Below, piece by piece: positions 6,001-54,805 of a stretch of DNA of 64,000 nucleotides. The position numbers and the translations under genes are program-made. The stretch's first letter is position 1. Every line of letters begins with the position of its first letter. Source of the DNA: Carpediemonas membranifera BICM (taxonomy: Eukaryota; Protista; Fornicata); assembly GCA_019828565.1 (NCBI GenBank), contig JAHDYR010000021.1, forward strand, positions 1-64,000, written 5' to 3'. The notes under the pieces were generated by a model. That model was not told the origin of the DNA and made no database searches. It saw only the letters and a program-made list of their open reading frames with translations.

Positions 6001-6749
6001 TCGCCGGGAGATTGGCTTAATCGCGAGCGCTAGCTAGGCACTAGCGATCTAGGGGATGTGCCGACTGTAGCTCCCCAGGCGGGTGAGTGGCAGAAATCAA
6101 AAAAATGTCATTTTTCATAAGTCAATCAGTTGATGCATTTGGGGGACTCCGCGCCTCTGCGTATAGTATACTAGGAGCCCTGGCGATTAAGCCAGACATT
6201 AGTCCGGGGCATCCCAGCTCGTGATTTCAGGGGCGACCACTTTCGAAAAATGGGCACGACCCAGCGCAACGAGTTGGAACGCTATCGCCGGGAGATTGGC
6301 TTAATCGCGAGCGCTAGCTAGGCACTAGCGATCTAGGGGATGTGCCGACTGTAGCTCCCCAGGCGGGTGAGTGGCAGAAATCAAAAATGTCATTTTCATA
6401 AGTCAATCAGTTGATGCATTTGGGGGGACTCCGCGCCTCTGCGTATAGTATACTAGGATCCCTGGCGATTAAGCCAGACATTAGTCCGGGGCATCCCAGC
6501 TCGTGATTTCAGGGGCGACCACTTTCGAAAAATGGGCACGACCCAGCGCAACGAGTTGGAACGCTATCGCCGGGAGATTGGCTTAATCGCGAGCGCTAGC
6601 TAGGCACTAGCGATCTAGGGGATGTGCCGACTGTAGCTCCCCAGGCGGGTGAGTGGCAGAAATCAAAAATGTCATTTTCATAAGACAATCAGTTGATGCA
6701 TTTGGGGGGACTCCGCGCCTCTGCGTATAGTATACTAGGAGCCCTGGCG
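1..6749. repeat. Tandem array of ~281-286 bp unit, ~23.7 copies visible (probably continues past the left edge)
   Basis: Unit CCAGCGCAACGAGTTGG... recurs at 1, 282, 563, 847 ... 6543. Copies differ almost only in homopolymer length. The array stops abruptly at ...GAGCCCTGGCG 6749. Confidence 0.98.
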
Positions 6750-24526: not shown

Positions 24527-24582
24527 CGAAATGGAGAGCTCTTCGCTCCAAACGTATTGACCAGCAAAAACTGCACATTGAC

Positions 24583-24674
24583 TGTGCTATTGAAGGGTCA
24601 AACAATGTGTTTACTGAGGAGGTTTAGACCCGTGGTGGTGTAAATGGTCCAAACTAGGGGATTTGAATGCATCA
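24583..24674 (-). repeat. 3' LTR (92 bp)
   Basis: Identical to 29138-29229; preceded on the minus strand by PPT GAAGGAGGGGGGGTAG. Confidence 0.95.
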
Positions 24675-24700
24675 CTACCCCCCCTCCTTCAATGCGATGT

Positions 24701-27700
24701 CTAATCCTGCCGAGTGCCATTTGATTGGCGGGCCGACATTCTGAGCTTCAAATCATCAAACCGCTTCATGGCTTCCTCTAGGGGTGTATTCACCTGCAGG
24801 TACTGCTGAAGTATCGCATTGCCTCTCATATCCTCGTCTGTTGGGTTTCTCCACGTGTCGTCTGCTGGTTCGTATCCTAACCAGCGCACCTTCACCTCTG
24901 GCGTCTTCATCACGTCCTTCTTGATCCTGTGCGTGACGATCTCTTTGATATACGTGTGCATACGGTCCTTGGCGCATTCTGCCTTCGCCTTCTCCTCATC
25001 CCAGTCGCCTTCTGCGAGCTTCAGATGCTTCACGTGCTTCTTATACGTCTTGTTCGTCTCGGGGTCCCTTATCACGAACGAGCTGGCGTTTCCAGGTGCC
25101 TTCTTGACCACCTGAAGTGGGCCTCTCCATCGTAGCTGGTACTTCCCTCTCTGTTCTGCATCCCTGTCGACCATGACCCACGCCTTGGCTGTGATACGGG
25201 TCGGTGTCCTCTTGTTGTGCTTGTCCTGTCTGGCCTTGGCCGCGTCGTACGTCTTCTTCGCCGCGTCCCTGCGCTGTTGAGCTCTCATCTTCTCGTTCCG
25301 GACCATCTTGTCAATGACGTCCGTAACGTCGGCTCTCTCCTGGTTCGACAGTGTCATCTTCCCTTCCCGCTCTGTGGACACCACTAGCTTCCAGGGTGAC
25401 GTGCCTGTCGTGGCAGATCTAGCCTGGTTGATGATGTTCTGAACCGCTGGCAGTAGGCCCATCCATTGCTTCGTGCCGCGCTGATGCATCTCGTCCCTGA
25501 GGTGGCGGTTCACTTCGCGATTCCTGCGCTCAACGATCCCATTCTCCTCGTGATGGTACGGGGTGGTCGTCTTCGCGCCCCCGCCTAGCTCTGCCGCGAA
25601 CGACTTGAACTCCTTCGAGTCGAACTGCCGTCCGCTATCGGTCACCCACTCGACCGGGGGCGGGAAGTGTGTGAGGTATCTTTCCCTGATTGCTCTGATG
25701 GTGGCGGCGGAGGTCACCGTCTTCAGTGGGCACAGGGTGACCCACCTCGTCGACTCCTCCACCAGCACCAGGATGTACCGGTAACCCTGGTCTGCCTCTG
25801 CCATGTTGATGGTGTCGGCGAACACGCGACTGAACGGCGACGCTGGCATGCGCAGCTGCTCCTGATATTGCTCGCGTGACCGGTGTTCGGCGTTCTTCTG
25901 GCACACGGGGCACTCCTTAACCATCCTCTGGACGTCCGTGTCCGCAGTGTCCCAGCGCAATCCCTTATCCTCGAGCTTCCACAGCGTCTGGTCAACCCCG
26001 TGGTGACCGGTGCCAGGTCCGTGAACGGACTTGAAGCGTGGCAGCTTCTGGGACTCGGGTATGGCCGGGAACGTGCCCTCCTCTTCGGGCTCGGCGTCAA
26101 GGGTGTCGCCCTCGTCTGTCCCGGCTGCTTCCTCGGTGTCGCTTTCGTCTGCCTCGTCGCGCTCGCGGTCAGGCTGTCCTGCCGCCTCTTCGCGGAACCG
26201 AACTCTCGGCTCGTCGGCGGCGACTTCTTCCGACTCTTCCTCCGCTGCGTCGACTGCACACATCACGGACACGATCGCACCCCTGCTGCTCTGGTGTCAG
26301 GCTCTCGGCTTCTGCGCGGGGCATTCTGGACAGGCCGTCCGCGACCGTATTAGACTTACCAGGCACGTGGGTGATGCTGAACTTGAGGTTGCCCAGCTCA
26401 AGTGCCCAGCGCTGCACCATGGGGTCGACGTTGCCCCCACGTGTACACGAGGTTACGGTGGTCCGTGAACATCTCAAACTCCCCTTGTGGCTAGGAACCG
26501 TCTCATCTTCCTCGTGGCCGCTATGATGGCGAATGCCTCCTTGCGGTAGGTGCTCCACTTGCGCTGGCTTGCTGTCAGGGCCTTGGAGAAGAACATCACA
26601 GGTCGCTTCGACCCGTCGTCCTCGACTCTGACCAGCACTGCGCCGACACCGGTGTCGGACGCGTCGGTGAACAGCTGTAGGCGGTCGTCAGGGCCCGGTG
26701 TGACCAACAGTGTGGGGGAGGTGACGATCTTCTTCAGTCTCTTGAACGCCTCTCTCTGGGGGTCGCCCCACACGAACGTCTGGCCCTTGATCTCCAGCTT
26801 GCGGATCGGCTCGGTGATGTCCGCGTAGCCGGGGATGAACTGGGAGAAGAAGTTGAAGATGCCCAATGTGGACCTGACGTCACTCACGTTTGTCGGGTCG
26901 GGCAGCTCCTGGACACCCTGGACGCGCCATGGGGGATGCGCTTTCCCTCCGCCGACACTATCCATCCGAGGTACTCCACCTCCGTCAACCCGAAAAAGCA
27001 CTTGTTCTTGTTGAGCTTCAGCTTCTTCTCTCGCACCCGGTCCATCACCCGCATCAGGTTCGCCTGGTACTCTTCCCAGGTCGACCCATAGACGATGATG
27101 TCGTCCACGTACACAAGACACGCCGTGCCCAGCATGTCCGCGAAAGCCTCCTCTAAGGCCTCTTGCATATGGCCAGCCGCGGTGGCAAGGCCGAACGGCA
27201 TCGTAGTGTAGGTATAGTGCCCCTTGGAGTACGTGAACGCCAGGTACTCCTGTGTGTCGGGGTGCACCGGGACCTGATGGAAGGCCTTGCTGAGGTCAAG
27301 TGCTGCGAAGTACTTGTTGCCCCTCAGCCTCTCGATCAGCTCTTCCGTCGACGGCAAGTCGTGCTGAGTCATGGACGCCAGGAGCTCGTTCAGTGGCGAG
27401 TAGTCCATGCACGGCCGCCACGTCCCGGCCTTCTTCCGCACCATGACCACTGAGCTGCTCCAGGGAGACTTGGTTGGGATGATGATCCCGCTTTCCTCCA
27501 GCTTCTGCATCTCTGACCGGAGTTCATCCTCCACCTGTCTTGGGAACCTTCGGGGCAGACGGAAGTAGGGTCGGGCGTCCTTCTTCAGCGTGACCTTGAA
27601 CGGCTTAAGGTCTGCTGGTTCGCCTGCATCGCCGAAGCAGTCGCTGTATCTCTCGGCCCAGTCCTCTGTGAGCTTGGAGATGACCTGGATGGGGTCTGCT

Positions 27701-29124
27701 TCGGTGTCAAGGTTGCGGTTGATTAGGCCGAGGGAGTCAATCACCTCCATGTTGATGAGGAACGACTCGGCCTTGTCCATCGCATACCAGGTCGGCGTCG
27801 CGGTGACCTCTCTGTCGAGGTGGAGGGTGATCGGCACATCTGACAACACTCGGTAGACCCTCCTCATCGACTCGTCAGCCAAGCGGACTGTCTCGCCCCG
27901 CGTGGCGATCTTCAGTCCCTTCTCGACGGCCCAGTCCCTCGGCACGACGCTGAACGAGGAGCAGGTGTCCATGCGGACGATCAACTCTTCGCCCAGCAGA
28001 CTGGCCTTCTCCTGCCAGATAGTCTTGGACGCTAACATAAAACAGAAAGGATACTCAGATGGCTTTACAACTGTGCACTGGTGCGACTTGTGGCCGAACT
28101 CGCCGCACCTGAAGCACTTCGGCTCCTCGTGTGGGCAGTCGGCCGAGTCGTGACCCTTTTCGCCGCAGTTGAAGCAGCCGCGGCCCCCTTGCCGCCGCTC
28201 AGGCTTGGCCCCCTCGGCCGCGCCGTCATTGCGTCTGCGCTCTCCCGTCCTCGCTGGCATCTTCCGCTCCTCTCTCGGCTTGCTCTGCAGTGACTCGAGC
28301 TGCTTCTGTAGGGCCGCGAGCCGGCTGCTCGGCACCAGGTCAAACTCTCGCATGGCATCTGTTCGGGCCCGTAGGTACTTTGCTATGACCTTCAACGACT
28401 TCGCGACTGTTGACTTGGAAAGAACAACAGAGCGAAGAGACGATGCGATCGTCTCGTCATCGAGGCTCGCCAGAACGATCTCCTGGAGCTCTCTAGCATC
28501 CAGGGATCCGACCTTCTCGAACAGATCTACCATATCCGTGAACACATGGCGGTAACGGGTGAAAGAGGTCTCACGGAGCTTGCGAAGCTCGCGGTACGCG
28601 CGCTGAAGACTGATATTGGTTAGTGTGGCCTCAGCCATCACCACCCAGCGCTCATCGCGCTTCCTCCTCGTTGTCTTCGCCTCCTTCTTCTCTTGGTCTT
28701 GAGCCATGATGTACCGGAGCAAAGCGTCGTCCCGGGCGGTCGTCTTGCCGCTTGTCTTCTTCTTCCGGGCCGGGTTAGCGATGAGTGTGCTCCGGGCGTC
28801 ATCCTCGGAGTCGCTCTGGGCGTGCGCGTCTTCGCCGCCCCTGCTGCTGTCGCTACCCTCGTTGGCGCTGAACATCTCCTCGTCGTCTTCACTCGAGCTG
28901 TCAGAGCTGTCATCGGAGCTTTCGTCGTCCTCCAGAGCTTGGTATGCGTCCTTGATACTTGTTCTCACTTTCGCGTCGATGCACTCGAAGAGGGTCTTCG
29001 GCTTGACCTCATCTTCAGCATAGAGTGCGTAGCTCATGCGGAACCTCACCCAGTCGGCTGCAGTGTGCCGGAGATACTTCGGGTAAGTCCCTTTTGGGTC
29101 GTCGTCATCGTCATCCTTCTTCAT
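24701..29124 (-). CDS. Gag-Pol polyprotein, interrupted by ~4 homopolymer frameshifts
   Basis: Two CCHC knuckles, protease MDTCS, RT LDLSKAFHQ/MPFGL/YVDD, RNase H TDAS/TDHRNL/ADGLSR, integrase GHHG..CPVC, TDSG, ENGIVER, chromodomain VKVRWLGYEPADDTW. Confidence 0.92.
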
Positions 29125-29137
29125 GCGTAGTAATTAC

Positions 29138-29229
29138 TGTGCTATTGAAGGGTCAAACAATGTGTTTACTGAGGAGGTTTAGACCCGTGGTGGTGTAAAT
29201 GGTCCAAACTAGGGGATTTGAATGCATCA
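29138..29229 (-). repeat. 5' LTR (92 bp)
   Basis: Identical to 24583-24674. Confidence 0.95.
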
Positions 29230-29379
29230 TTGACTCCAGAAAACTGCCCTCCAACAACCATAAACCTGGTCACTCAGACCCTGGGCGCGCGAGCTGGTGC
29301 CAGTCAAGCTACACGAGGTCCGCGGCGAGCGGAGGGAGCACGTCGAGGTGGACGTGGCCGGGGACGAATAAACTTGACA

Positions 29380-31286
29380 AACTTTACACAGCTCTCGCGT
29401 CAATGGTCCGGCTGCACCCGCGGCACGTGACCTGCCTCCGGTTCGCGCTGACTGTGGCCGACCGATGGCAGTGGGGGCACGTGACGGTGCGCTGCCTCGC
29501 GACGCCCTCGGGCAGGTCGACTGTCTGGCGCGGCGCCATCTCGCACTGGCCGCCGTTGTGGGCCATGTGCTCTTCCTGGTTGGCCACGCGGAGCAGGCAC
29601 TTGTGGCAGAAGTCCTGGCCGCACGGGCACTTCGACATCTTGCAGCTGTCCAGGTCGCCTTCGCGCGAGGTCAGCTCGCCGCACGTGGGGCAGCGGCGGA
29701 TGACGGGGACGTCCACAGCGGCGCCTCTGCCGAGCGTGACCAGGCGGCACGTCTGCAGGATGTCGTTCTGCTCGACGAGCGTCCTGATCTCGGCGCGCGA
29801 GTATGCCTGCTGGCGCCGCGGGATGACGTAGAAGTCGGCTGCCGCGCCTGCTGCGGCAGGGGCCGAGTCGAGCACCGCCTGGCGCATCTGGCCGGCGTCC
29901 TCCAGACGAGGGAGGCGGGCGGCGCCCGTGCAGTCGGCGTACACGCGGTGGTGGTCGTGGAGGGTCACGCCGACGGAGCCGGGCTGGGGGAACTGGCCGC
30001 CGAACACGTGGAAGGCGAAGCGGCGGCGCGTCTCGTCGTCCTCGAGCACGGCACGGAGGGCGTCCTGCACGCCCTGGCTGTCCGCGGGGAAGCGCAGCGG
30101 GGCGAGCACGGCGGCGACCGTGAGCGGGTTGGGGCGCACAAGCAGGGCCCGCAGCTGGGCGGCCGTCAGCGCGAGGACCTTCTCGCTGAAGCGCGTCTTC
30201 GCGGCCATGCCGTTGCGGACGATCTGCATGCGCTCGGCGAAGCGGCGTCTCACCTCGTCGCCGTACGCCTTGAGGTCGCCCTCGAAGCCCTCGAGCGGAC
30301 ACGCGGCCGCAGCCTCCGCAACAGACCGCTGCAGCGCCCGGGCGACGATGGGCATCAGCGCTCCCAGGTCGACGCGGCCGCCCGTGAGCGCGACGAGCCA
30401 GGCGTCGCTGACCATGTCCGCGGGCAGGGTGATGCCGTCGAGCAGCATGAGCTGCAGCACGCGGCCGAGCCCCAGCAGGACCGGGCGCAGGTCGTCGAGC
30501 GGCATGTCGAGGGCGTCGGGCGTGAAGACCAGCGTGCCCTCGCGGAAGATGGGCACAGGTAACTCCATGCCCCCGACGGCCTGGCGGACGGCCACATGCG
30601 GCAGCTCGACGACCAGGTCGGGCAGGGCCTTCGCGGAGTCGTCGCCCGAGAGCGTCGCGGGGATGGCGAACAGGTCCTCCTCGCACGCGGCGATGCTGGC
30701 CAGGCTCGCCGAAACGTCGTCAGCGAGGGCGATGTCGACCGGGTCCTCGCGGAACATCTGCAGGCGCACGCGGTCGATGTCGTCGACGAAGGCGTGGGCG
30801 TTCGCGAACCTGCTGCTCGCCGCGTTGAGGTCGACCTCAGGGTCCAGCTCGTTGGCAGCGGCAGCGAAGAGGCCGTCGGCCAGGGCGCGGCGGACGGACC
30901 AGCGGGCCTCGGGGTGGGTGGCGAGCATGCCGGAGAGCACGTCGCGCAGGGCGTCGGGGACGGCGACGGTGGCGAGCAGGGCTGTGCAGAGAGTGTCGTT
31001 GTTGACGGCCGAGGCGGATGCGAGGTCGCCCATGAGAAGAGCGAGCAGCCTCTGGCAGAAGGCGGGGTAGTCCGGCGCCATGGCCCCGAGCATCGTCAGG
31101 CCCGCGTGGTAAACGTCGGCGGTCTGCTGCTCGCGGTGGCTCAGCTTCTTCCCTGCATTGCGCGCGGCGATCTCCTCGGGCGCGCTGAAGGCGAGCGTGC
31201 CGATGTTGACTCCGGTCGCGGTCGCGTTCACGGCGTCCATGTTCGAGGCCGTCTCGAAGTCGACGAGCACGGGGTGGCCCTCGCGC

Positions 31287-31319
<33 letters not shown>

Positions 31320-34300
31320 CAGACGCCCGCGCTGTGCAGGTCGTGGATCGCGGTGAGCAGGCCGTGGAGCAGTCTGCGCAGGCTGTCGGGCGAGTCGGCT
31401 GGGGCGTCGCGCAGATGGCGCTCGAGGCGCTCCATGACGATCGTGCAGGTCTGCTCGGCGCTGTCGACGAGGACGAAGTGCAGCCTGGGCACGGCGGGGC
31501 TGTGCGTCATGCGCGACAGGATGCCCGCCTCGCGGTCGCAGAGCTTGCGATGGTGCTCGGTGTCGAGCTTGAAGGTCTTGGCGATGAAGGTCTGGCCGTC
31601 GCGGGTCACGATCTGGCACAGCGCTCTGTTCTCGCTGACGGTCGACTCCACGGTGAAGTCGGACAGCGACAGGTCGGCGCGCATCTCGGGGAGGTCCATG
31701 AGGTGGGCCAGCCCCATCTCGCGCAGCTCGGCAAAGAGGCTGGCCGACGGCGCGGTGAGGGCCTCCAGCTCGGGGCAGAGCCGGACGAGCTGCGGCGTGC
31801 GGCGGGAAAGAACATCCTTCATGTGTGCCAGCTTGACTATGACGGAGTCTAGTTCCTTCTGCGCTTCGTCAAGCTTGCCGACGCCGTGTTTGCGTTTCCT
31901 GCTGAAGAAGTCGACATCTTCTTCGAGATCTTCGGCCTTGCTCTTCAGGTGCTGGTAGTCGCCCAGCGACCGGAGCTGCGCAGTGATGGCGTCGGCCTCG
32001 GCGAACCCAGCCAGGTGGTCCTCAGCCTCGGCGGCCAGGCCAGTCAACTGGCGAATGGTGCGCTCCTCAGCGCTCGTGTCCTCGCCAAGCTCCTTCCGAC
32101 TGAGGGCACACTGCCACGTCACGCGGACGGCCGGCTGGAGGAAGGCGCGGAGCGTGGCGTACCTGGCCTGCAGCTCGGGCGCGAGGGTGGGGAAGTCGAC
32201 GACCTCGTTGTCAGCGGCCTCGAGCATGCGGGCCATCTCGTCGAGCGAGGGGAGAGACTCGAAGGCGGCGGCGCCGTCGACGATGGCCGAGGCCGCCTGG
32301 TAGGCAGCGCTGACAGCGGCGATCCTGGCCTCGAGCGCCTCGACCCCGGCCCTGGCCTGGGCGATGACCGCCTCGTACTCGGCGATGCGGGTCTCTGGGT
32401 GGCGTCTGGCCGGGCCGAGTCGGCTGATGAGACCAGCGGGCGACGGAGTGTCGTCAGTGTCAAGTGTTGGCATGGCGACCGAGAGCAGGGGGTGGCCCTC
32501 GAGCGTGGCGCTCAGCACAGCAGCCTTGTCAGCAGCGGCGAAGGTCATGATGGCCTGGAAGGACGAAATGGTGGTCCTCGCCTTAGATAGTTCTGCCCGG
32601 AGACTGGCGTTCTCATCGTGACTCACATCCAATCTCTCACTCCAAAGCTTGCAGTTCGCCTGTGATGTGATTGCGTCAACGGCATCATTATGCGGACCTT
32701 CGGCCACAAACAGTCCACCCGCCATTCTGATCATGGACGAAATCGGGGCGGCCATGGCGATGCGGAGATCGCGTGGGGCGACCTGCGATGAGGCCACGCG
32801 AGAGACGACCTGCCTCAGCTGGCCGATAGTCGCGTCAACCAGGACAACGTCCGAGACGGCGCCCGAGCAGAAGTCGGCAACAATCTGGTCGCACCTGCAT
32901 TCGTTGAAGAGCTTGATGAGCTTGGCCAGCTCGGCGTCCTTGGAGTCTATCTTGGCGAACTTGTCCTCCAGCCAGACTCTGGCGGCGGGGCGGGTCAGCG
33001 TCATCGTGAAGGAGCGGGGCAGACCAGTGGCGAGGAAGTGGAGGAGGATGCGAGCGGTGTCGCTGATGAGTACTTCTGAGCCGTCAGGGTCGATGGCGAT
33101 GTCGGCGTCGGGGGCGACTGGGCTGGAGCAGAGCTGGTTGACGGTGGCCAGGAACTGGGGGGTGCGGGTGAGTGCGCTCCAGACCTTGGCTGTCGTGTCG
33201 CTGGATCCAGACACGATCGTGGTGCCGTCTCTGGAGAACGCGACACCATTCACCCCGCCATTGTGCCCCGAAAACGTCCTGATCAGCGCCCCGGTCGCGA
33301 CGTCCCACTGCATGATGGTGTTGTCGCCAGACCCAGACACCAGAGTCCTGCCGTCGGGGGAGAAGGCGAGGCTCCACACAATATCGGTGTGCCCATCAAG
33401 GGTCCGAGTCAGCTGGTCGGTTGCGGAGTCCCAGAACTTGATGAAGCCAACATTGTCTCCGGATGCGATGATGGTGCCGCTTGGTGATAACGCAACGTTA
33501 CAGACTGGGTTGCCATGGTTCATGGTCCTGATGCATTCGCCAGTAGTGGTGCTCCATTGGTTGATCGTGCCGTCAACACTTCCAGTGTAAATGGTCGAGC
33601 CATCAGGGGAGATGGCCACGCCATGCACGGAATTATTATGCCCTGTTAGTGTCAGCCTGCACTGCCCTGTCTCGACGTCCCAGACCTTGGCGGTTTTGTC
33701 ATACGATCCGGAGACCAGGGTGCGGCCATCGGACGAGAATGCAACACAGTGCACAACATCAGTGTGCCCGCTTTGGGTCTTAGTCACCCGACCTGTGGCT
33801 ACGTTCCAGAGTTTGATGAGACCGTCATCGCCACCATATGCGATGGTCGACCCGTCCGGCGACACGGCATCATAAAAAGCTTCATTTCTAAGTTTCATGG
33901 TCCTGATACAACGACCAGTGGCCGAGTCCCACTGCTTGATTGTGCCATCATCTGATGAAGTGATGATGGTGCCGTCGGGGGCAGTGGCGACACCGAACAG
34001 TGCGTATATGTGCCCAGTCAGTGTCCTGATACACGTATCCTTTCCAATTTCACTTGCGGGCCGCGTGTTCCATGCCTCGAGTGCGAACTCAACCTGGACA
34101 TCGTCATGGTCGGCCTCGAGTCTGCCATCGACCATCGTGACGGTAACAGCGGGCTCAATGAGCTCTATCGTCAGAGTCTCGGGTTCTATACTCTCGCTGA
34201 GTAGGTACTGGATGACCTGCTCGAGGTCCTGGACGGTGATTGGTGTCTCGCCTCGCTTGCGGATCTGGATGCCCTCGGGGCCGGGGTGCTTGGAGCTTGC

Positions 34301-34629
34301 GGTGTGGATATGAGTATCTACTGCTCTGCAGTCCTTGCTGCGTGAGAATGCGGCCTCAATACGTACCACTGGCTGTGTAATCACGGAATTGGCTGATCAA
34401 ACGCGTCAGGCGTGCTGTGTAAAGGAATCGCGATGCAGTAGTGTTGCTGCTGTTGCTACACACCATCTGTGTGAGAATCGCTGGAAACCGCGAACCTTGG
34501 GCATCGTCGCTCCATCGCTTGCCTCGATAACTCGACAAAGACATCGAAGTGAATGCGCTGGTCAGGGGTGAGTCGACGCCGTGCCAGCCCAGGAACTGCA
34601 CAGTGACGCAGGACAGTGGCTCTAGACAG
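29380..34629. repeat. Arm A of a ~5.25 kb inverted segmental duplication (partner 49554-54805)
   Basis: Near-identical reverse complement, including ~245 bp upstream of the ORF. Confidence 0.95.
29384..34384 (-). CDS. WD40 - coiled coil - protein kinase - HECT-like - IBR/RING2-like - Zn ribbon protein (copy 1; start codon uncertain)
   Basis: ~7 WD40 repeats; kinase IAK, HRDLKPEN, DFE, APE; HECT-like LGRVL, RRRFAFHVFG, YADCTGAARLP; CPTC...DSCKMSKCPCGQDFCHKC. Confidence 0.85.
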
Positions 34630-34738: not shown

Positions 34739-36643
34739 TTACCTACCGATACCACCCTGCTCGCTCGCCGAGCCGACCCCGAACCGCCACAGCGGCAGCC
34801 TCTTCATGGGCTGCGCCGACTTCTCCACGGGCAACGGCGTATGCACGTTCACAGCGTCCGCCTCAACCCCAAGCCGGCCATAGCGGTTGTCACCGCTCGA
34901 GAAGACGCCGCACTTGGTGTGGAACCGGAAGGACCCGGGACAGCCGCAGATACGACGGATCGAACCCAGTGCGAGGGGCGTCCAGTGCCGGATAACGGCC
35001 TCGTCGGTCTCCTCGGCCTCGTTGGAGTGGATCCCCAGGGCCCCGAACCTATTATCGCCCAGGCCAAACCACTTTCCGGCAGAGTTCTCGGCAAAGTGAC
35101 TCGTTCCGTTCGAAGAGAAAGACTTCACGCGCCAGGGGAAGGAAATCTCGGTAGGATTGAGGTACTCGGTGAGTTGCATCGGCATGAACGGTCCGAACAC
35201 GCCCGACCGGCCGGTAAGGAGCACGCTGTCGTTCGAACAGAACAGGGTCGAGTCGCGCGCCCAAATCAGCTCAGTGACCGCGGCCTTAACCTCAGTAAAC
35301 ACGCTAACGCTCTTCTTGTTTCCCAGCCCGAGCTGGCCGGTCGAGTTGTCTCCGGCAACAAGGCAGTGTGCTCCAAAGTGAAGGCCGACTGAGGCCTGGC
35401 CCACAGTCACGCCAGAGAGCCGCTGGATGGGGTATGATAGCCTAAGTCGTGTGAACTCTGACACCGCAGTGCTGGTCGCGCCTACGCCGAGCTGACCGTG
35501 GCTGTTATCGCCAGCGACCGCGAGGTAGTTCTCGCACTGGACGAAGGAGTGGCCCCACGCTGTGAGAATAAAACGGAAGCGCCGGCCACGACGGAACCTG
35601 CTGGTCCGTGCGAGCGTGCGTTGGATCTTGGGGCACGCCTTGAATGAGACCGCGGTTGGGGCCGACACGACGGCGTTCGCAGAGCCTGGTATGCCCGTCT
35701 GACCCCACAACGAGTTACCCCAGGCGAAGAGCCCCTGCTGCGTCGCTGCAAGAACGGTCCTGCCGTCCGACTGGAGGTCGTCAACTCTGGGAAGCCGTAC
35801 TCTGGTCCACGCGACAATGAACCGCGGGCCGAGGGTTCCGACCTGGCACTCATCGTTGTTTCCACGCGCGAACAGTTTGCCGAAGTACGACGTGAACTCA
35901 GTGTCCCTGAAATGTGTGGTGATACCGTCCCGCCGGGCACCAGTCATCACCTGATAGAACTTACGGCATATGAACGCTGCTGCACGCTGGCTGGGGCTGG
36001 CAGCATCACAGGTCAAGCCAGCAGTGGTCATGATGGCCCAGATCGTGCCAGGGTGGAGGGTGTAGATGGTCTCGGGAAGCACGGGATGCTGGATGTCAAG
36101 CGTAACATCGGCGTCGCCACTAAGTGCGGAGCATGCCCGCTGAAGATCCCGGGCGAGGGCCTCAACGTGGATGCCGAGGCGCTTGTCGACCTTAAAGGCC
36201 AAATCTAGAGAATCCAGGAGCCCAGCCCGGATCTCACTAAATCTCCGGATCGCCTCTTCTGGTATGAACGGCGACTTGGGCGATACTGTGCTCTCAGGGA
36301 CCGGGAGCTTCAAGTCGGCGAACCGGCGGTGGACACGATGGACCGACCGCACCAGGGCCGAGGCCACGTTCCCCGGTACGTCCTGGTCGTCTGTGCTGCT
36401 GAGCAGGGGTTCGATGGAGCCTGTGAAGGCCATAAGCCGGCTCGTGTCTTCGCGTGCTTTCTCGGCGACGGCCTTTCGGGATTGCTCGAGAGATGATAGG
36501 GTCTTATTCAACAATTTCTGCGCTTCCAGGATCGGAACGACGAGCTCGGGGCTCGTGGTGGTGTTTACGGCGCGTACCATATGAACGGAGGCGCGCTGGA
36601 GGCAACGGGACGTGGTTTCGATTGAACTGGTAAGCTTCTGCAT
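34739..36643 (-). CDS. RCC1 repeat protein with helical N-terminus
   Basis: GLFAWGNSLWGQTG, AGDNSHGQLGVG, AGDNSTGQLGLG, SGDNRYGRLG; family motif FICRKF. Confidence 0.85.
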   Translation of the reverse strand: MQKLTSSIETTSRCLQRASVHMVRAVNTTTSPELVVPILEAQKLLNKTLSSLEQSRKAVAEKAREDTSRLMAFTGSIEPLLSSTDDQDVPGNVASALVRSVHRVHRRFADLKLPVPESTVSPKSPFIPEEAIRRFSEIRAGLLDSLDLAFKVDKRLGIHVEALARDLQRACSALSGDADVTLDIQHPVLPETIYTLHPGTIWAIMTTAGLTCDAASPSQRAAAFICRKFYQVMTGARRDGITTHFRDTEFTSYFGKLFARGNNDECQVGTLGPRFIVAWTRVRLPRVDDLQSDGRTVLAATQQGLFAWGNSLWGQTGIPGSANAVVSAPTAVSFKACPKIQRTLARTSRFRRGRRFRFILTAWGHSFVQCENYLAVAGDNSHGQLGVGATSTAVSEFTRLRLSYPIQRLSGVTVGQASVGLHFGAHCLVAGDNSTGQLGLGNKKSVSVFTEVKAAVTELIWARDSTLFCSNDSVLLTGRSGVFGPFMPMQLTEYLNPTEISFPWRVKSFSSNGTSHFAENSAGKWFGLGDNRFGALGIHSNEAEETDEAVIRHWTPLALGSIRRICGCPGSFRFHTKCGVFSSGDNRYGRLGVEADAVNVHTPLPVEKSAQPMKRLPLWRFGVGSASEQGGIGR

Positions 36644-45855: not shown

Positions 45856-46005
45856 GATTGTTGTCGGACTGATCACTTCAAAAGAAAGAGGATGAAAGAG
45901 AGCCCCAGGACAAGCTGGGGTCACCTCTGGGGCACTCCTGGAGCTCCCTGTCTCGGGGCATTCTTGAGGAAACCCAGTCGACTGTGGTGAAGAGTGCGAG
46001 AGAAC

Positions 46006-48363
46006 ATGAGAATAGCAGTCATTGGTGATGTTCACGGAGAATACTCCAAGGCGTATGATCATGTGGCTAAGCTAGAGAAGGAAGACGGAAAGCCCATCGA
46101 TCTGGTGATCATGTGCGGCGATTTGAAGACGATGCGCGATGAAGGCGACCTGGACACCCTCCAGGCCCCTGAGAAGTACCGCAAGACGAACGACTTCGTA
46201 GACTACTACTGGGGCAAGAAGACAGCGCCCTATTTCACGATCTGCATCTCCGGGAACCACGACAGCATGAACCACATCACCGCCCTCCCCTACGGCGGCT
46301 GGCTTGCCCCCAAGATGTACTACCTCGGCCGCTCCGCCTGTGTGACGTACAAGGGCCTCCGCATCGCCGGACTCAGCGGCATTTTCAAGCCGTACAGCAT
46401 TGATTTGCCCCTCCCTGGCCATGCCCCCTTCGACGAGTCCGACCTCATCTCCTCCTACCACCAGCGCACTGTGGACATGGAGAAGCTCGCCGGCCTTGAC
46501 CCTGTCGACATCTCGCTCAGTCATGATTGGCCCGCCCGCATCCTCATGACGCCAGGCGCCGATACTCGCAAAATAAGGTCTAATCTCGTCAAGGAGGACC
46601 GCATAGGCCACTTCGGCTCGCAATTCGCGGCTCAGATGATCAAGGATCTCTCTCCCGCGTACCACTTCTCCGGCCATCTTCACCACGAGTGGTCTGTGAA
46701 GACGGGCTCCACTCAGTTCATGGCGCTCGCCCAGGCGGACAAGAAGAACGACGCTGAGTTCGTCAAGGTCATCGACATCGAGCCCCGCGGTGGTGCCAAG
46801 GATACCGGCCTCGAGCTGGACGGTAAGTTCGTAGCGAACCTCACCAACGGCCACCACAGCGAAGCATACGTCGTGCCCACGAACACGTTCACACGCAAGC
46901 CTAAGGCAGACACCCGCGCCGTCGAGTACTTCGAGGAGCCCCACACCAAGCGCGTGGCCACCGCTCTCGGTCTGCCCCTGCCGACGCATAAGTCAAAGGT
47001 CGACGCCGCCTCGGACAAGAGAGCTAAGGTCCAGGAGAGCACGACCAAGCAGACCACGGAGCCCTTAGAGGGACTTGACAGGTGTGGTATGCTCATCCAG
47101 CTGGGCAGAGGTCTTTCGGCACGTGTCGTCGCCGCTATGGCCGAGCAGTTTAAGGCAAAGGGACTGGCGGTTGCATCGTTCTCATACGACGAGTTCTGCT
47201 TCAACCCAGCCAACCAGAACATCCCGAGCGACAGACGCGACGACACCTTCACCCGCGGTATCATTGAGGCCGCCTGGTCTGCCGATGTCGTCCTCATCGA
47301 CCACCCTGTGCCCGACGCCGACCGGGTCAACGCCTACCGCGAGATATTCCGGTCCCTCGGCACCCGGCTCATCGTCCTCCGCGCCACCCATCCGGTTTCC
47401 CTGCTCCCCGCCGCCGTCTTTTCGTGCACACGGACGGAGTACCGGTCCAAGGTCCTCGACGGGCTGAGTGAGCCCAATGTAGCCAGACACGTGGCGTCCG
47501 AGGTCGCTGTCATGGATGCGATCACTGCGCTCGAGCTCCCCATTGACGGTCACGACTCGGCTGAGAGACGGGCGGAGCTCGGCAAGGTCATGGAGGCCCT
47601 CTCCACAGGCGAGGAGGGCATCGGCGATGGACCCCGCCTGGCTAAACTTCTCGAGGCCAACGCAGACACTCCCGCCGAGCCCGCGGACCTGGCCTCTCTG
47701 ATCATCGCCAGAGCCCTGCCTGACCCCGTTGTCGCCCGGCTCGTGAAGCTCAGGCCGTTTGCCCCTGAGGCATGGCGTGAGCACCACCTATGGCCAATCA
47801 CTGCGAACATTCTGTTGCGGACGAAGATCGTGAAAATGACGATATGCCCCGCTGCTCTGCGGCATGTTGTCGGCTTCAACGGCACCACTACGCGCCGTAT
47901 CAACCGCCGGACCGGGTGCACTGTCACATTCCGTCAACTCGGCCGCACTGACAGCAAGGTGGTCCTCCGCATCGACGGCACCGACGCCGACAAGATCGAG
48001 GACGCCGTGACTATGATCGAGCGCGCCATCCACGGTTCAAAGCCGACCGACGACTTTACTCACGACGTGATGATCGTCCACGGGTTGACCAGCACGCGTC
48101 TCGGCTCCCTCCGGCTGTATACGGATCATCAAGAGTCTTTGGCCATGGATGCTCTCAAGGGCGTCAAGGCCATCCTCGGCGGGGCGACCGAACTCAAGGC
48201 GGGCGACCTCAGGATGCGGGTGAACAACTTGCTCTTTAAGAAGTCGATCGGCTTTGTAGCATCGAGCGGCGACTTTGACTCTGAGGAGAGGGTCAAGCCC
48301 GCGGCTGTCGTGCTCCGCGGGTCGAGGGACTACCACATGACGGTGCGGTTCGACCTGCAGTAA
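46006..48363 (+). CDS. DBR1: RNA lariat debranching enzyme Dbr1 with a long C-terminal extension including a KH domain
   Basis: MRIAVIGDVHG, CGD, PEKYRK..DFVDYYWGKK, GNHD, LPYGGWLAP, SHDWP, GHLH; KH GxxG motif VVGFNGTTTRRI. Confidence 0.85.
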   Translation: MRIAVIGDVHGEYSKAYDHVAKLEKEDGKPIDLVIMCGDLKTMRDEGDLDTLQAPEKYRKTNDFVDYYWGKKTAPYFTICISGNHDSMNHITALPYGGWLAPKMYYLGRSACVTYKGLRIAGLSGIFKPYSIDLPLPGHAPFDESDLISSYHQRTVDMEKLAGLDPVDISLSHDWPARILMTPGADTRKIRSNLVKEDRIGHFGSQFAAQMIKDLSPAYHFSGHLHHEWSVKTGSTQFMALAQADKKNDAEFVKVIDIEPRGGAKDTGLELDGKFVANLTNGHHSEAYVVPTNTFTRKPKADTRAVEYFEEPHTKRVATALGLPLPTHKSKVDAASDKRAKVQESTTKQTTEPLEGLDRCGMLIQLGRGLSARVVAAMAEQFKAKGLAVASFSYDEFCFNPANQNIPSDRRDDTFTRGIIEAAWSADVVLIDHPVPDADRVNAYREIFRSLGTRLIVLRATHPVSLLPAAVFSCTRTEYRSKVLDGLSEPNVARHVASEVAVMDAITALELPIDGHDSAERRAELGKVMEALSTGEEGIGDGPRLAKLLEANADTPAEPADLASLIIARALPDPVVARLVKLRPFAPEAWREHHLWPITANILLRTKIVKMTICPAALRHVVGFNGTTTRRINRRTGCTVTFRQLGRTDSKVVLRIDGTDADKIEDAVTMIERAIHGSKPTDDFTHDVMIVHGLTSTRLGSLRLYTDHQESLAMDALKGVKAILGGATELKAGDLRMRVNNLLFKKSIGFVASSGDFDSEERVKPAAVVLRGSRDYHMTVRFDLQ

Positions 48364-49553: not shown

Positions 49554-52500
49554 CTGTCTAGAGCCACTGTCCTGCGTCACTGTGCAGTTCCTGGGCTGGC
49601 ACGGCGTCGACTCACCCCTGACCAGCGCATTCACTTCGATGTCTTTGTCGAGTTATCGAGGCAAGCGATGGAGCGACGATGCCCAAGGTTCGCGGTTTCC
49701 AGCGATTCTCACACAGATGGTGTGTAGCAACAGCAGCAACACTACTGCATCGCGATTCCTTTACACAGCACGCCTGACGCGTTTGATCAGCCAATTCCGT
49801 GATTACACAGCCAGTGGTACGTATTGAGGCCGCATTCTCACGCAGCAAGGACTGCAGAGCAGTAGATGTACAGATCCGCACCGCAAGAGCTGAGCGCCCC
49901 GGCCCCGAGGGCATCCAGATCCGCAAGCGAGGCGTCACACCAATCACCGTCCAGGACCTCGAGCAGGTCATCCAGTACCTACTCAGCGAGAGTATAGAAC
50001 CCGAGACTCTGACGATAGAGCTCATTGAGCCCGCTGTTACCGTCACGATGGTCGATGGCAGACTCGAGGCCGACCATGACGATGTCCAGGTTGAGTTCGC
50101 ACTCGAGGCATGGAACACGCGGCCCGCAAGTGAAATTGGAAAGGATACGTGTATTAGGACACTGACTGGGCACATATACGCACTGTTCGGTGTCGCCACT
50201 GCCCCCGACGGCACCATCATCACTTCATCAGATGATGGCACAATCAAGCAGTGGGACTCGGCCACTGGTCGTTGTATCAGGACCATGAAACTTAGAAATG
50301 AAGCTTTTATGATGCCGTGTCGCCGGACGGGTCGACCATCGCATATGGTGGCGATGACGGTCTCATCAAACTCTGGAACGTAGCCACAGGTCGGGTGACT
50401 AAGACCCAAAGCGGGCACACTGATGTTGTGCACTGTGTTGCATTCTCGTCCGATGGCCGCACCCTGGTCTCCGGATCGTATGACAAAACCGCCAAGGTCT
50501 GGGACGTCGAGACAGGGCAGTGCAGGCTGACACTAACAGGGCATAATAATTCCGTGCATGGCGTGGCCATCTCCCCTGATGGCTCGACCATTTGCACTGG
50601 AAGTGTTGACGGCACGATCAACCAATGGAGCACCACTACTGGCGAATGCATCAGGACCATGAACCATGGCAACCCAGTCTGTAACGTTGCGTTATCACCA
50701 AGCGGCACCATCATCGCATCCGGAGACAATGTTGGCTTCATCAAGTTCTGGGACTCCGCAACCGACCAGCTGACTCGGACCCTTGATGGGCACACCGATA
50801 TTGTGTGGAGCCTCGCCTTCTCCCCCGACGGCAGGACTCTGGTGTCTGGGTCTGGCGACAACACCATCATGCAGTGGGACGTCGCGACCGGGGCGCTGAT
50901 CAGGACGTTTTCGGGGCACGATGGCGGGGTGAATGGTGTCGCGTTCTCCAGAGACGGCACCACGATCGTGTCTGGATCCAGCGACACGACAGCCAAGGTC
51001 TGGAGCGCACTCACCCGCACCCCCCAGTTCCTGGCCACCGTCAACCAGCTCTGCTCCAGCCCAGTCGCCCCCGACGCCGACATCGCCATCGACCCTGACG
51101 GCTCAGAAGTACTCATCAGCGACACCGCTCGCATCCTCCTCCACTTCCTCGCCACTGGTCTGCCCCGCTCCTTCACGATGACGCTGACCCGCCCCGCCGC
51201 CAGAGTCTGGCTGGAGGACAAGTTCGCCAAGATAGACTCCAAGGACGCCGAGCTGGCCAAGCTCATCAAGCTCTTCAACGAATGCAGGTGCGACCAGATT
51301 GTTGCCGACTTCTGCTCGGGCGCCGTCTCGGACGTTGTCCTGGTTGACGCGACTATCGGCCAGCTGAGGCAGGTCGTCTCTCGCGTGGCCTCATCGCAGG
51401 TCGCCCCACGAGATCTCCGCATCGCCATGGCCGCCCCGATTTCGTCCATGATCAGAATGGCGGGTGGACTGTTTGTGGCCGAAGGTCCGCATAATGATGC
51501 CGTTGACGCAATCACATCACAGGCGAACTGCAAGCTTTGGAGTGAGAGGTTGGATGTGAGTCACGATGAGAACGCCAGTCTCCGGGCAGAACTATCTAAG
51601 GCGAGGACCACCATTTCGTCTCTCCAGGCCATCATGACCTTCGCCGCTGCCGACAAGGCTGCTGGGCTGAGCGCCACGCTCGAGGGCCACCCCCTGCTCT
51701 CGGTCGCCATGCCAACACCTGACACTGACGACACTCCGTCGCCCGCTGGTCTCATCAGCCGACTCGGCCCGGCCAGACGCCACCCAGAGACCCGCATCGC
51801 CGAGTACGAGGCGGTCATCGCCCAGGCCAGGGCCGGGGTCGAGGCGCTCGAGGCCAGGATCGCCGCTGTCAGCGCTGCCTACCAGGCGGCCTCGGCCATC
51901 GTCGACGGCGCCGCCGCCTTCGAGTCTCTCCCCTCGCTCGACGAGATGGCCCGCATGCTCGAGGCCGCTGACAACGAGGTCGTCGACTTCCCCACCCTCG
52001 CGCCCGAGCTGCAGGCCAGGTACGCCACGCTCCGCGCCTTCCTCCAGCCGGCCGTCCGCGTGACGTGGCAGTGTGCCCTCAGTCGGAAGGAGCTTGGCGA
52101 GGACACGAGCGCTGAGGAGCGCACCATTCGCCAGTTGACTGGCCTGGCCGCCGAGGCTGAGGTCCACCTGGCTGGGTTCGCCGAGGCCGACGCCATCACT
52201 GCGCAGCTCCGGTCGCTGGGCGACTACCAGCACCTGAAGAGCAAGGCCGAAGATCTCGAAGAGGATGTCGACTTCTTCAGCAGGAAACGCAAACACGGCG
52301 TCGGCAAGCTTGACGAAGCGCAGAAGGAACTAGACTCCGTCAAAGTCAAGCTGGCACACATGAAGGATGTTCTTTCCCGCCGCACGCCGCAGCTCGTCCG
52401 GCTCTGCCCCGAGCTGGAGGCCCTCACCGCGCCGTCGGCCAGCCTCTTTGCCGAGCTGCGCGAGATGGGGCTGGCCCACCTCATGGACCTCCCCGAGATG

Positions 52501-52862
52501 CGCGCCGACCTGTCGCTGTCCGACTTCGCCGTCGAGTCGACCGTCAGCGAGAACAGAGCGCTGTGCCAGATCGTGACCCGCGACGGCCAGACCTTCTTCG
52601 CCAAGACCTTCAAGCTCGACACCGAGCACCATCGCAAGCTCTGCGACCGCGAGGCGGGCATCCTGTCGCGCATGACGCACAGCCCCGCTGCGCCCAAGCT
52701 GCACTTCGTCCTCGTCGACAGCGCCGAGCAGACCTGCACGATCGTCATGGAGCGCCTCGAGCGCCATCTGCGCGACGCCCCAGCCGACTCGCCCGACAGC
52801 CTGCGCAGACTGCTCCACGGCCTGCTCACCGCGATCCACGACCTGCACAGCGCGGGCGTCTG

Positions 52863-52895
<33 letters not shown>

Positions 52896-54805
52896 GCGCG
52901 AGGGCCACCCCGTGCTCGTCGACTTCGAGACGGCCTCGAACATGGACGCCGTGAACGCGACCGCGACCGGAGTCAACATCGGCACGCTCGCCTTCAGCGC
53001 GCCCGAGGAGATCGCCGCGCGCAATGCAGGGAAGAAGCTGAAGCATCGCGAGCAGCAGGCAGCCGATGTCTACCACGCGGGCCTGACGATGCTGGCGCTG
53101 ATGACGAAGGACTATACGGATTTCTGCAGGGACATCCTCTCTCTCAGCAACAACAGGGACTTGCTCGAGAGTTCGACCGCCAACGACGACACTCTCTGCG
53201 CCGCCCTGCTCGCCACTGTTGCCGTCCCCGACGCCCTGCGCGACGTGCTCTCCGGCATGCTCGCCACCCACCCCGAGGCCCGCTGGTCCGTCCGCCGCGC
53301 CCTGGCCGACGGCCTCTTCGCTGCCGCTGCCAACGAGCTGGACCCTGAGGTCGACCTCAACGCGGCGAGCAGCAGGTTCGCGAACGCCCACGCCTTCGTC
53401 GACGACATCGACCGCGTGCGCCTGCAGATGTTCCGCGAGGACCCGGTCGACATCGCCCTCGCTGACGACGTTTCGGCGAGCCTGGCCAGCATCGCCGCGT
53501 GCGAGGAGGACCTGTTCGCCATCCCCGCGACGCTCTCGGGCGACGACGCCGCGAAGGCCCTGCCCGACCTGGTCGTCGAGCTGCCGCGCGTGGCCGTCCG
53601 CCAGGCCGTCGGGGGCATGGAGTTACCTGTGCCCATCTTCCGCGAGGGCACGCTGGTCTTCACGCCCGACGCCCTCGACATGCCGCTCGACGACCTGCGC
53701 CCGGTCCTGCTGGGGCTCGGCCGCGTGCTGCAGCTCATGCTGCTCGACGGCATCACCCTGCCCGCGGACATGGTCAGCGACGCCTGGCTCGTCGCGCTCA
53801 CGGGCGGCCGCGTCGACCTGGGAGCGCTGATGCCCATCGTCGCCCGGGCGCTGCAGCGGTCTGTTGCGGAGGCTGCGGCCGCGTGTCCGCTCGAGGGCTT
53901 CGAGGGCGACCTCAAGGCGTACGGCGACGAGGTGAGACGCCGCTTCGCCGAGCGCATGCAGATCGTCCGCAACGGCATGGCCGCGAAGACGCGCTTCAGC
54001 GAGAAGGTCCTCGCGCTGACGGCCGCCCAGCTGCGGGCCCTGCTTGTGCGCCCCAACCCGCTCACGGTCGACGCCGTGCTCGCCCCGCTGCGCTTCCCCG
54101 CGGACAGCCAGGGCGTGCAGGACGCCCTCCGCGCCGTGCTCGAGGACGACGAGACGCGCCGCCGCTTCGCCTTCCACGTGTTCGGCGGCCAGTTCCCCCA
54201 GCCCGGCTCCGTCGGCGTGACCCTCCACGACCACCACCGCGTGTACGCCGACTGCACGGGCGCCGCCCGCCTCCCTCGTCTGGAGGACGCCGACCAGATG
54301 CGCCAGGCGGTGCTCGACTCGGCCCCTGCCGCAGCAGGCGCGGCAGTCGACTTCTACGTCATCCCGCGGCGCCAGCAGGCATACTCGCGCGCCGAGATCA
54401 GGACGCTCGTCGAGCAGAACGACATCCTGCAGACGTGCCGCCTGGTCACGCTCGGCAGAGGCGCCGCTGTGGACGTCCCCGTCATCCGCCGCTGCCCCAC
54501 GTGCGGCGAGCTGACCTCGCGCGAAGGCGACCTGGACAGCTGCAAGATGTCGAAGTGCCCGTGCGGCCAGGACTTCTGCCACAAGTGCCTGCTCCGCGTG
54601 GCCAACCATCGAGAGCACAATGCCCACTACGGCGGCCAGTGCGAGATGGCGCCGTGCCAGACAGTCGACCTGCCCGAGGGCGTCGCGAGGCAGCGCACCG
54701 TCACGCGCCCCCACTGCCATCGGTCGGCCACAGTCAGCGCGAACCGGAGGCAGGTCACGTGCCGCGGGTGCAGCCGGACCATTGACGCGAGAGCTGTGTA
54801 AAGTT
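49554..54805. repeat. Arm B of the inverted duplication
   Basis: Reverse complement of 29380-34629 with a few divergent patches. Confidence 0.95.
49799..54801 (+). CDS. WD40-kinase-HECT-like-IBR/RING2-like protein (copy 2); 1-nt frameshift in the T-run at ~50308
   Basis: Same domains as copy 1; T4 here versus T5 in copy 1. Confidence 0.82.

Follow-up and report, generated by a model that had tools for sequence, protein, structure and literature searches.

Can one polypeptide join a sensor propeller, a protein kinase and two ubiquitin ligase modules of the thioester-forming type? This question is raised by a gene on the reverse strand (29384-34384) of the first 64,000 nucleotides of contig JAHDYR010000021.1 (assembly GCA_019828565.1), a stretch that we call the window, from the free-living metamonad Carpediemonas membranifera BICM. 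An earlier note, made from the DNA letters alone, had described the gene as a fusion of WD40 repeats and a kinase with two ligase modules, and had proposed that it encodes a defence receptor. We find that the order of domains is a WD40 propeller, two unnamed modules, a coiled coil, a kinase, a region with a predicted HECT fold and a shortened zinc tail. This combination of WD40, kinase, HECT and RBR stump is undescribed. The description "dual E3" suits the gene family, and not the copy in the window.

The gene and its domains

The reading frame is open across 1666 codons plus a stop, without a break, and it is a real gene of a multigene family. Its listed first codon is GTG, five codons past a TGA; paralogs P0003 and P0005 have ATG at the matching start position. 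Because that ATG reads GTG here, the product in the public database (P0024, found by exact-sequence look-up) begins at Met84, at window position 34135, and is 1583 aa long. Its C-terminal part is labelled only "protein kinase domain". The features of the gene are as follows.

29384-34384, minus strand: whole open frame, 1666 codons and stop, GTG first (frame listing)
29384-34135, minus strand: deposited coding sequence, 1583 aa from Met84 (P0024; exact-sequence look-up)
34061-34267, 32870-33079 and 32585-32780, minus strand: three copies of an unnamed module of ~65 aa (no family found)
33173-34030, minus strand: seven-bladed WD40 propeller, aa 119-404 (Pfam, repeat comparison)
31685-33097, minus strand: two copies of the unnamed module, then a long helical or coiled-coil region, aa 430-900 (no family found)
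30875-31606, minus strand: Ser/Thr protein kinase domain, aa 927-1170 (Pfam, residues read from the sequence)
30134-30820, minus strand: HECT-like N-lobe, aa 1189-1417 (AlphaFold model, structure search)
29846-30130, minus strand: HECT-like C-lobe, aa 1419-1513 (structure search)
29930-29932, minus strand: codon of Cys1485, the predicted equivalent of the HECT catalytic cysteine (four structural alignments, hhalign)
29543-29692, minus strand: zinc unit 1, a finger of IBR/RING2 type, aa 1565-1614 (Pfam IBR below cut-off, paralog model)
29414-29479, minus strand: zinc ribbon CxxC-x14-CxxC, aa 1636-1657, the first half of an IBR (alignment with long-tailed paralogs)
49554-54805, plus strand: inverted copy of the whole gene (98.2% identity)

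Pfam places seven WD40 repeats at aa ~119-404 (E 4.7e-63). The repeats are regular, 41-43 aa long, with pairwise identities of 34-60% (mean 44%). About 470 aa then separate the propeller from the kinase, and consist of two of the unnamed ~65-aa modules and a long helical stretch. The module occurs three times in the window protein (aa ~40-108, 436-505 and 535-600) and many more times in paralogs P0007, P0009 and P0010. For the modules and the middle region as a whole, Pfam scans gave no family, and the protein atlas and the language model gave no usable neighbour.

The Pkinase match covers aa 927-1170 with 79.5 bits (cut-off, 31.7). The residues read from the sequence include the catalytic lysine (IAK), the glutamate of helix C, HRDLKPEN with its asparagine (aa 1023), the aspartate of DFE (aa 1042) and APE, and the match begins at profile position 21, which leaves the glycine-loop region unmatched. 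The motifs quoted in the earlier note are all present in the frame, and DFE and the missing glycine loop of the kinase are as it described them. The nearest solved structures are generic Ser/Thr kinases (CaMKK, Rad53, PDK1 and TTK; E ~1e-11). Since the glycine loop is missing and DFG reads DFE, the domain is probably, but not certainly, an active kinase.

The region between the kinase and the stop codon

We modelled the C-terminal 500 aa with AlphaFold2, using a 12-sequence alignment and no templates, and obtained one confident model (pLDDT mostly 74-97 across residues 30-340 of the segment). The best 50 listed Foldseek matches of this model were all HECT, down to E 2.6e-8, and 93 matches in all were found at E <= 0.001. 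VIA-align gave Z 12-12.8, with 250-296 residues aligned over whole HECT domains. In an exhaustive structure search, independent of Foldseek, the top 19 of 48,161 Protein Data Bank (PDB) representatives were again all HECT (Z 6.1-12.7), and the best other fold reached Z 4.7. The two lobes also matched when taken separately. The N-lobe aligned with E6AP (1c4z) at Z 11.3 and rmsd 3.7 A over 176 residues, and with the N-lobes of UBR5, WWP1 and Rsp5 at rmsd 4.0-4.8 A across 200-223 residues; the C-lobe aligned with that of HUWE1 (6fyh) at Z 8.1 and rmsd 2.9 A (95 of 115 residues), and with that of UBR5 (3pt3) at Z 7.8. On this model, aa 1189-1513 very probably adopt a two-lobed HECT fold, the outcome that the earlier note had anticipated for the C-terminal 500 aa.

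Comparisons below the level of structure point the same way. The ten best named neighbour clusters in a protein-language-model search all belonged to HECT, as family or as clan, with a weak score (0.78). When aligned by hhalign with the four canonical HECT domains of the genome, the region was collinear over 193 columns, with cysteine on cysteine and the landmarks reproduced; LLGLGRV (aa 1303), LTAAQLRAL (aa 1406), FHVFGG (aa 1458) and YADCTG (aa 1482) all stand in the right register. In the most distant homologue, P0019, the segment aligned with LLGLGRVLQL gave a Pfam HECT match of E 0.0049. The domain stays hidden to methods based on sequence alone: a profile of the HECT-like region found 0 matches among PDB sequences and retrieved no canonical HECT among 1.84 billion proteins, and single-sequence phmmer against the PDB returned only chance matches such as MS2 coat protein and the Rad8 zinc finger.

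We located the candidate catalytic residue by counting along the structural alignments. Cys1485 is model residue 319. The alignments that run to model residues 343-344 stop at WWP1 914, Smurf2 741, NEDD4L 946 and ITCH 896; counting back, and assuming that the last 24-25 residues are free of gaps, Cys1485 falls on WWP1 C890, Smurf2 C716, NEDD4L C922 and ITCH C871, which we take to be the catalytic cysteines of those enzymes. In the model, Cys1485 therefore occupies the place of the HECT catalytic cysteine. Of the 18 copies in the genome that are nearly full-length, 12 have a cysteine at this position. In P0019 and P0009 a cysteine lies in the same loop, one and three alignment positions off, respectively. 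Between paralogs, dN/dS of the HECT-like part is ~0.4-0.6, a range that indicates constraint, though a loose one. A predicted complex of the domain with the organism's own ubiquitin scored 0.00, which counts neither for nor against binding. As a side observation, the only UbcH5-like E2 of the genome is split by an intron, and the one intronless full-length E2 that we found is Ubc13-like; Ubc13 is not the usual HECT partner.

After the C-lobe, the protein ends in a zinc tail with motifs CPTC (aa 1565), SCKMSKCPCG..FCHKC (aa 1580-1596) and CPHC...CRGC (aa 1636-1657). Unit 1 gave a Pfam IBR match of E 1e-4 and 22.7-22.9 bits, under the cut-off of 24.3. The long-tailed homologues P0003, P0005 and P0019 explain what this tail is: they carry unit 1 (CPxC...CK.S.CPCG..FCH.C), a complete IBR and a RING2 with GC(Q/D)H. 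The tail of P0003 scores above the cut-off of Pfam IBR (31.8 bits, three stretches), and 48 of its best 50 Foldseek matches, including the first 48, are RBR ligases, among them RNF216, HOIL-1, Parkin, HOIP, HHARI and ARIH2. In the P0003 model, unit 2 matched IBR domains, including those of HOIL-1, HOIP and RNF216 (Z 4.1-5.8), unit 3 matched RING2 domains (Z ~4.2), and unit 1 matched RNF216 RING2, Parkin IBR and the HHARI catalytic domain (Z ~3), and not RING1. The assignment of unit 1 is tentative, because the model is modest (pLDDT 65) and Z is low for small domains. No RING family, and hence no RING1, appeared when the tail was scanned with Pfam. We conclude that the zinc tail derives from an RBR ligase, and that this copy stops halfway through the IBR. 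The finger of IBR/RING2 type and the zinc ribbon named in the earlier note are both borne out by Pfam and the paralog model.

A second thioester-forming module, which the earlier note had also proposed, is unsupported for the window copy. Unit 1 has an extra cysteine, Cys1581, at the spacing of the RING2 catalytic cysteine, but no histidine two residues on. The second unit breaks off behind its first zinc site, so the ribbon is half of an IBR. The window protein and eight other short-tailed copies, including the inverted twin, stop 9 residues after CRGC. Since the frame ends there, a true RING2/Rcat is missing, and no remnant of one was found beyond the stop codon. Two paralogs, P0003 and P0005, and P0019 of another genome are the only members with the catalytic RING2 Cys-x-His. 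Their RING2 itself ends right after its first zinc site, and the stop codon at that point is confirmed by the genome; the end reads ...C.C...(W/F)N(E/Y) and then stop, in L010 and L013 (G000:C26) and in L005 (GCA_002919055.1). The occurrence of this minimal RING2, without the second zinc site, in two genomes argues that it is conserved and not an artefact of truncation.

Family and genomic neighbourhood

The profile of the HECT-like region identified 17 proteins among 1.84 billion representative proteins. The 14 matches checked by name or genome locus are C. membranifera paralogs (the short fragments P0014, P0015 and P0017 were unchecked); the exceptions are P0019 (assembly GCA_002919055.1, in which a G+C content of 56-60% might fit C. 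frisia) and a weak match, P0022, of uncharacterised origin. All close protein matches are annotated in the same species. The published genome comprises 24.2 Mb in 69 scaffolds with 57.1% G+C (PMC8516963), and our genome-wide searches covered 24,237,836 bases in 69 contigs, where we counted 53 family matches, many of them fragments. As far as these searches indicate, the family is confined to Carpediemonas, with P0019 from the separate assembly. The sensor end varies among paralogs, from one to two propellers and from two to at least eight small modules. We also observed that P0009 (G000:C7:333329-335167, L019) has a RhoGEF domain where the zinc tail would otherwise follow the HECT-like domain, which indicates that the C-terminal effector end of the family is modular. 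P0013 is annotated HET-E.

The window itself holds a second copy of the gene in inverted orientation, 98.2% identical. In this twin, a 1-nt deletion at 50304 shifts the frame, and a zinc ligand is lost (Cys1636 to Arg); the deposited product is 1380 aa long (P0001). Aligned with each other, the two copies show 104 differing positions (100 substitutions and 4 indel columns, with a 3-nt indel at 31015), of which 54 lie in one 250-nt block of the kinase C-lobe (30880-31129 versus 53050-53300). This patch suggests gene conversion from a third paralog. Over the two copies dN/dS is ~0.7, on very few changes.

Around the two copies, the window contains the following further features; its whole length gave no Rfam family and no tRNA.

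1-6749: satellite of 286 bp at the contig start, 23.7 tandem copies, 98% matches
24578-29234: gypsy-type chromovirus with zinc knuckle, reverse transcriptase, integrase and chromodomain
34739-36643, minus strand: RCC1-repeat gene, directly upstream of the gene and on the same strand
45994-48363, plus strand: Dbr1-like calcineurin-like phosphoesterase fused to a KH domain

A PHD protein is a further eukaryotic neighbour. The gypsy-type element, the PHD and RCC1 genes and the annotation of the paralogs in C. membranifera led us to reject a source in bacteria or viruses for the window. An RCC1-like domain joined to HECT is the HERC architecture; because the duplicated segment ends at 34629 and does not include the RCC1 gene, the two genes are probably neighbours by chance. 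Elsewhere in the genome, P0020, annotated as a chromodomain protein, holds a fragment of the HECT-like domain. This fragment, together with the chromovirus next to the gene, suggests that retroelements may be breaking or moving copies of the family.

Proposed function and known systems

We favour, by a modest degree of belief, a sensor-kinase with a diverged internal HECT domain that may charge ubiquitin on Cys1485, followed by a shortened, RBR-derived zinc tail. The propeller would bind a partner or ligand, and the kinase would phosphorylate a substrate or the protein itself. The HECT-like domain would receive ubiquitin from an E2 onto Cys1485 and then hand it on. In the window copy, the zinc tail would serve for binding or positioning only; in P0003, P0005 and P0019, the minimal RING2 Cys-x-His could be a second or alternative thioester site.

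Several observations weigh against this proposal. (i) Four of the five AlphaFold models were unfolded (mean pLDDT ~45), the alignment behind the good one holds 12 sequences, the hhalign result is not significant (P 0.18), and Pfam HECT (PF00632) does not match the window protein even at E <= 10, nor does any family member reach its cut-off of 23.9 bits (best, P0019, 17 bits). (ii) The domain is internal, with 153 more residues after the C-lobe, and a HECT is held to be active only at the C-terminus (PMC4327156). (iii) The residues around Cys1485 (YADCTG) differ from the canonical HTCFN. (iv) The N-lobe spans 205 residues versus 242 in E6AP, ~37 fewer; the hhalign gaps fall at the canonical beta-hairpin of the E2-binding subdomain, and the model has only helices in that segment. 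This trimming may affect E2 binding. (v) The cysteine is absent in 6 of the 18 copies, all divergent, and these include P0012 and P0013, in which the HECT-like domain does end the protein. (vi) The kinase lacks its glycine loop and has DFE for DFG. (vii) The gene has lost its start ATG, its twin is frameshifted, and a chromovirus retrotransposon lies ~150 nt downstream of its stop codon.

Points (ii) to (v), together with a dN/dS just moderately below 1, are what one would see if a real but dead HECT fold docked or regulated the kinase and the zinc tail were a leftover binding module. There is precedent for a non-functional HECT beside zinc fingers in human G2E3 (PMC3673628). A non-catalytic scaffold of this kind falls short of an even chance, and is nearly as likely as charging of Cys1485. 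What speaks for charging is that 12 paralogs keep a cysteine exactly at the catalytic position, that P0019 and P0009 keep one in the same loop, and that the members with the cysteine also keep unit 1 intact, whereas P0010 has lost both.

An innate-immune-type receptor, in which the variable propeller would sense a foreign molecule and trigger kinase and ubiquitin signalling, appears unlikely. The lineage-specific expansion to 53 matches, the patchy gene conversion between near-identical copies, the variable N-terminal sensor parts and the fast evolution would fit such a role. However, whole-protein and piecewise Pfam scans detected neither a NACHT or NB-ARC NTPase nor a known death-fold or TIR domain, and the STAND-type receptor suggested by the earlier note thus lacks its STAND NTPase. 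The WD40 repeats, which the earlier note likened to those of STAND/HET-type receptors, are regular, but at 44% mean identity they seem unlike the near-identical repeats of HET-E type. In addition, expanded kinase families are common in protists without any link to immunity.

There is a small chance that the family is functional but the window copy a recent, inactive pseudogene. The GTG in place of the paralogs' ATG in both window copies, the damage to the twin (frameshift and lost zinc ligand), the adjacent chromovirus and the dN/dS between the copies are consistent with decay. Against this, the frame is intact for 1666 codons with every domain complete, Met84 precedes the propeller, and the 1583-aa product is deposited. 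We give a similarly low rating to a relay between two ligase modules, in which the HECT fold would replace RING1 and hence dock E2~ubiquitin, ubiquitin would shuttle between the HECT cysteine and the minimal RING2 cysteine, the kinase would gate the process in cis, much as Parkin is gated in trans by PINK1, and the variable propeller would be a sensor specific to this protist group, perhaps with an immune role. Under a relay, the window copy would be a derived form that uses the HECT cysteine alone. That the region is unrelated to HECT and the fold an artefact of modelling, as the unfolded models and non-significant sequence statistics might suggest, is very improbable, given that the lobes match separately, that Z is 12.7 versus 4.7 for the next fold, and that motif register, language-model neighbours and the sub-threshold Pfam match in a homologue agree.

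In this family of about twenty genes, the HECT fold has a kinase before it and zinc fingers of RBR origin behind it. The prevailing view is that HECT domains work solely as the last part of a chain, and their fusion with RBR-type modules was previously undescribed. An active domain in our preferred sensor-kinase would break this positional rule, and the family would offer a natural example of a single polypeptide with two thioester-type ligase modules and a kinase; an inactive one would be a clear instance of a HECT pseudo-enzyme. In both cases, some 20 proteins labelled only "protein kinase domain" gain a ubiquitin-system annotation.

The literature on Carpediemonas with HECT, ubiquitin or kinase yielded no description of this family, nor did we meet an account of IBR/RING2 modules behind a HECT fold. 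The novelty claim of the earlier note, which knew of no protein with a kinase and two thioester-forming E3 modules, has to be narrowed: Naegleria gruberi and Ectocarpus have proteins with a protein kinase and a highly divergent HECT (Class IV, Grau-Bove et al. 2013; PMC3673628), and G2E3 combines zinc fingers with a non-functional HECT (PMC3673628). Like these proteins, the window protein pairs a kinase or zinc fingers with a divergent, possibly inactive HECT. Unlike it, they have HECT domains that Pfam detects; neither an IBR/RING2 tail nor an internal HECT has been described in any of them, and the family profile did not retrieve them.

At the sensor end, the window protein differs from HET-E/NWD-type proteins in the absence of NACHT or NB-ARC and in repeats that are just 34-60% identical, and resembles these and WD40-kinase proteins in that a regular seven-blade propeller is joined to a signalling domain. 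At the other end, the family departs from RBR ligases (Parkin, HOIP, HOIL-1, RNF216 and HHARI) in three respects: it has no RING1, its first finger being IBR/RING2-like and not cross-braced; its RING2 ends after the first zinc site; and the window protein stops within the IBR, before any RING2. What it shares with them is best seen in the tail of P0003, which has the IBR and the RING2 GC-x-H at matching positions. Compared with the canonical HECT ligases (E6AP, NEDD4/WWP/Smurf, HUWE1, UBR5 and UBE3C), the window domain is only ~12-16% identical and without a Pfam match, lies inside the protein with no C-terminal tail or -4 Phe, has an N-lobe that is shorter by ~37 aa in the vicinity of the E2-binding hairpin, and carries a cysteine that not all paralogs share. 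In common with them, it has the predicted two-lobed fold (Z up to 12.8) with the core motifs in the same order, and its C-lobe loop carries a cysteine where the catalytic one stands.

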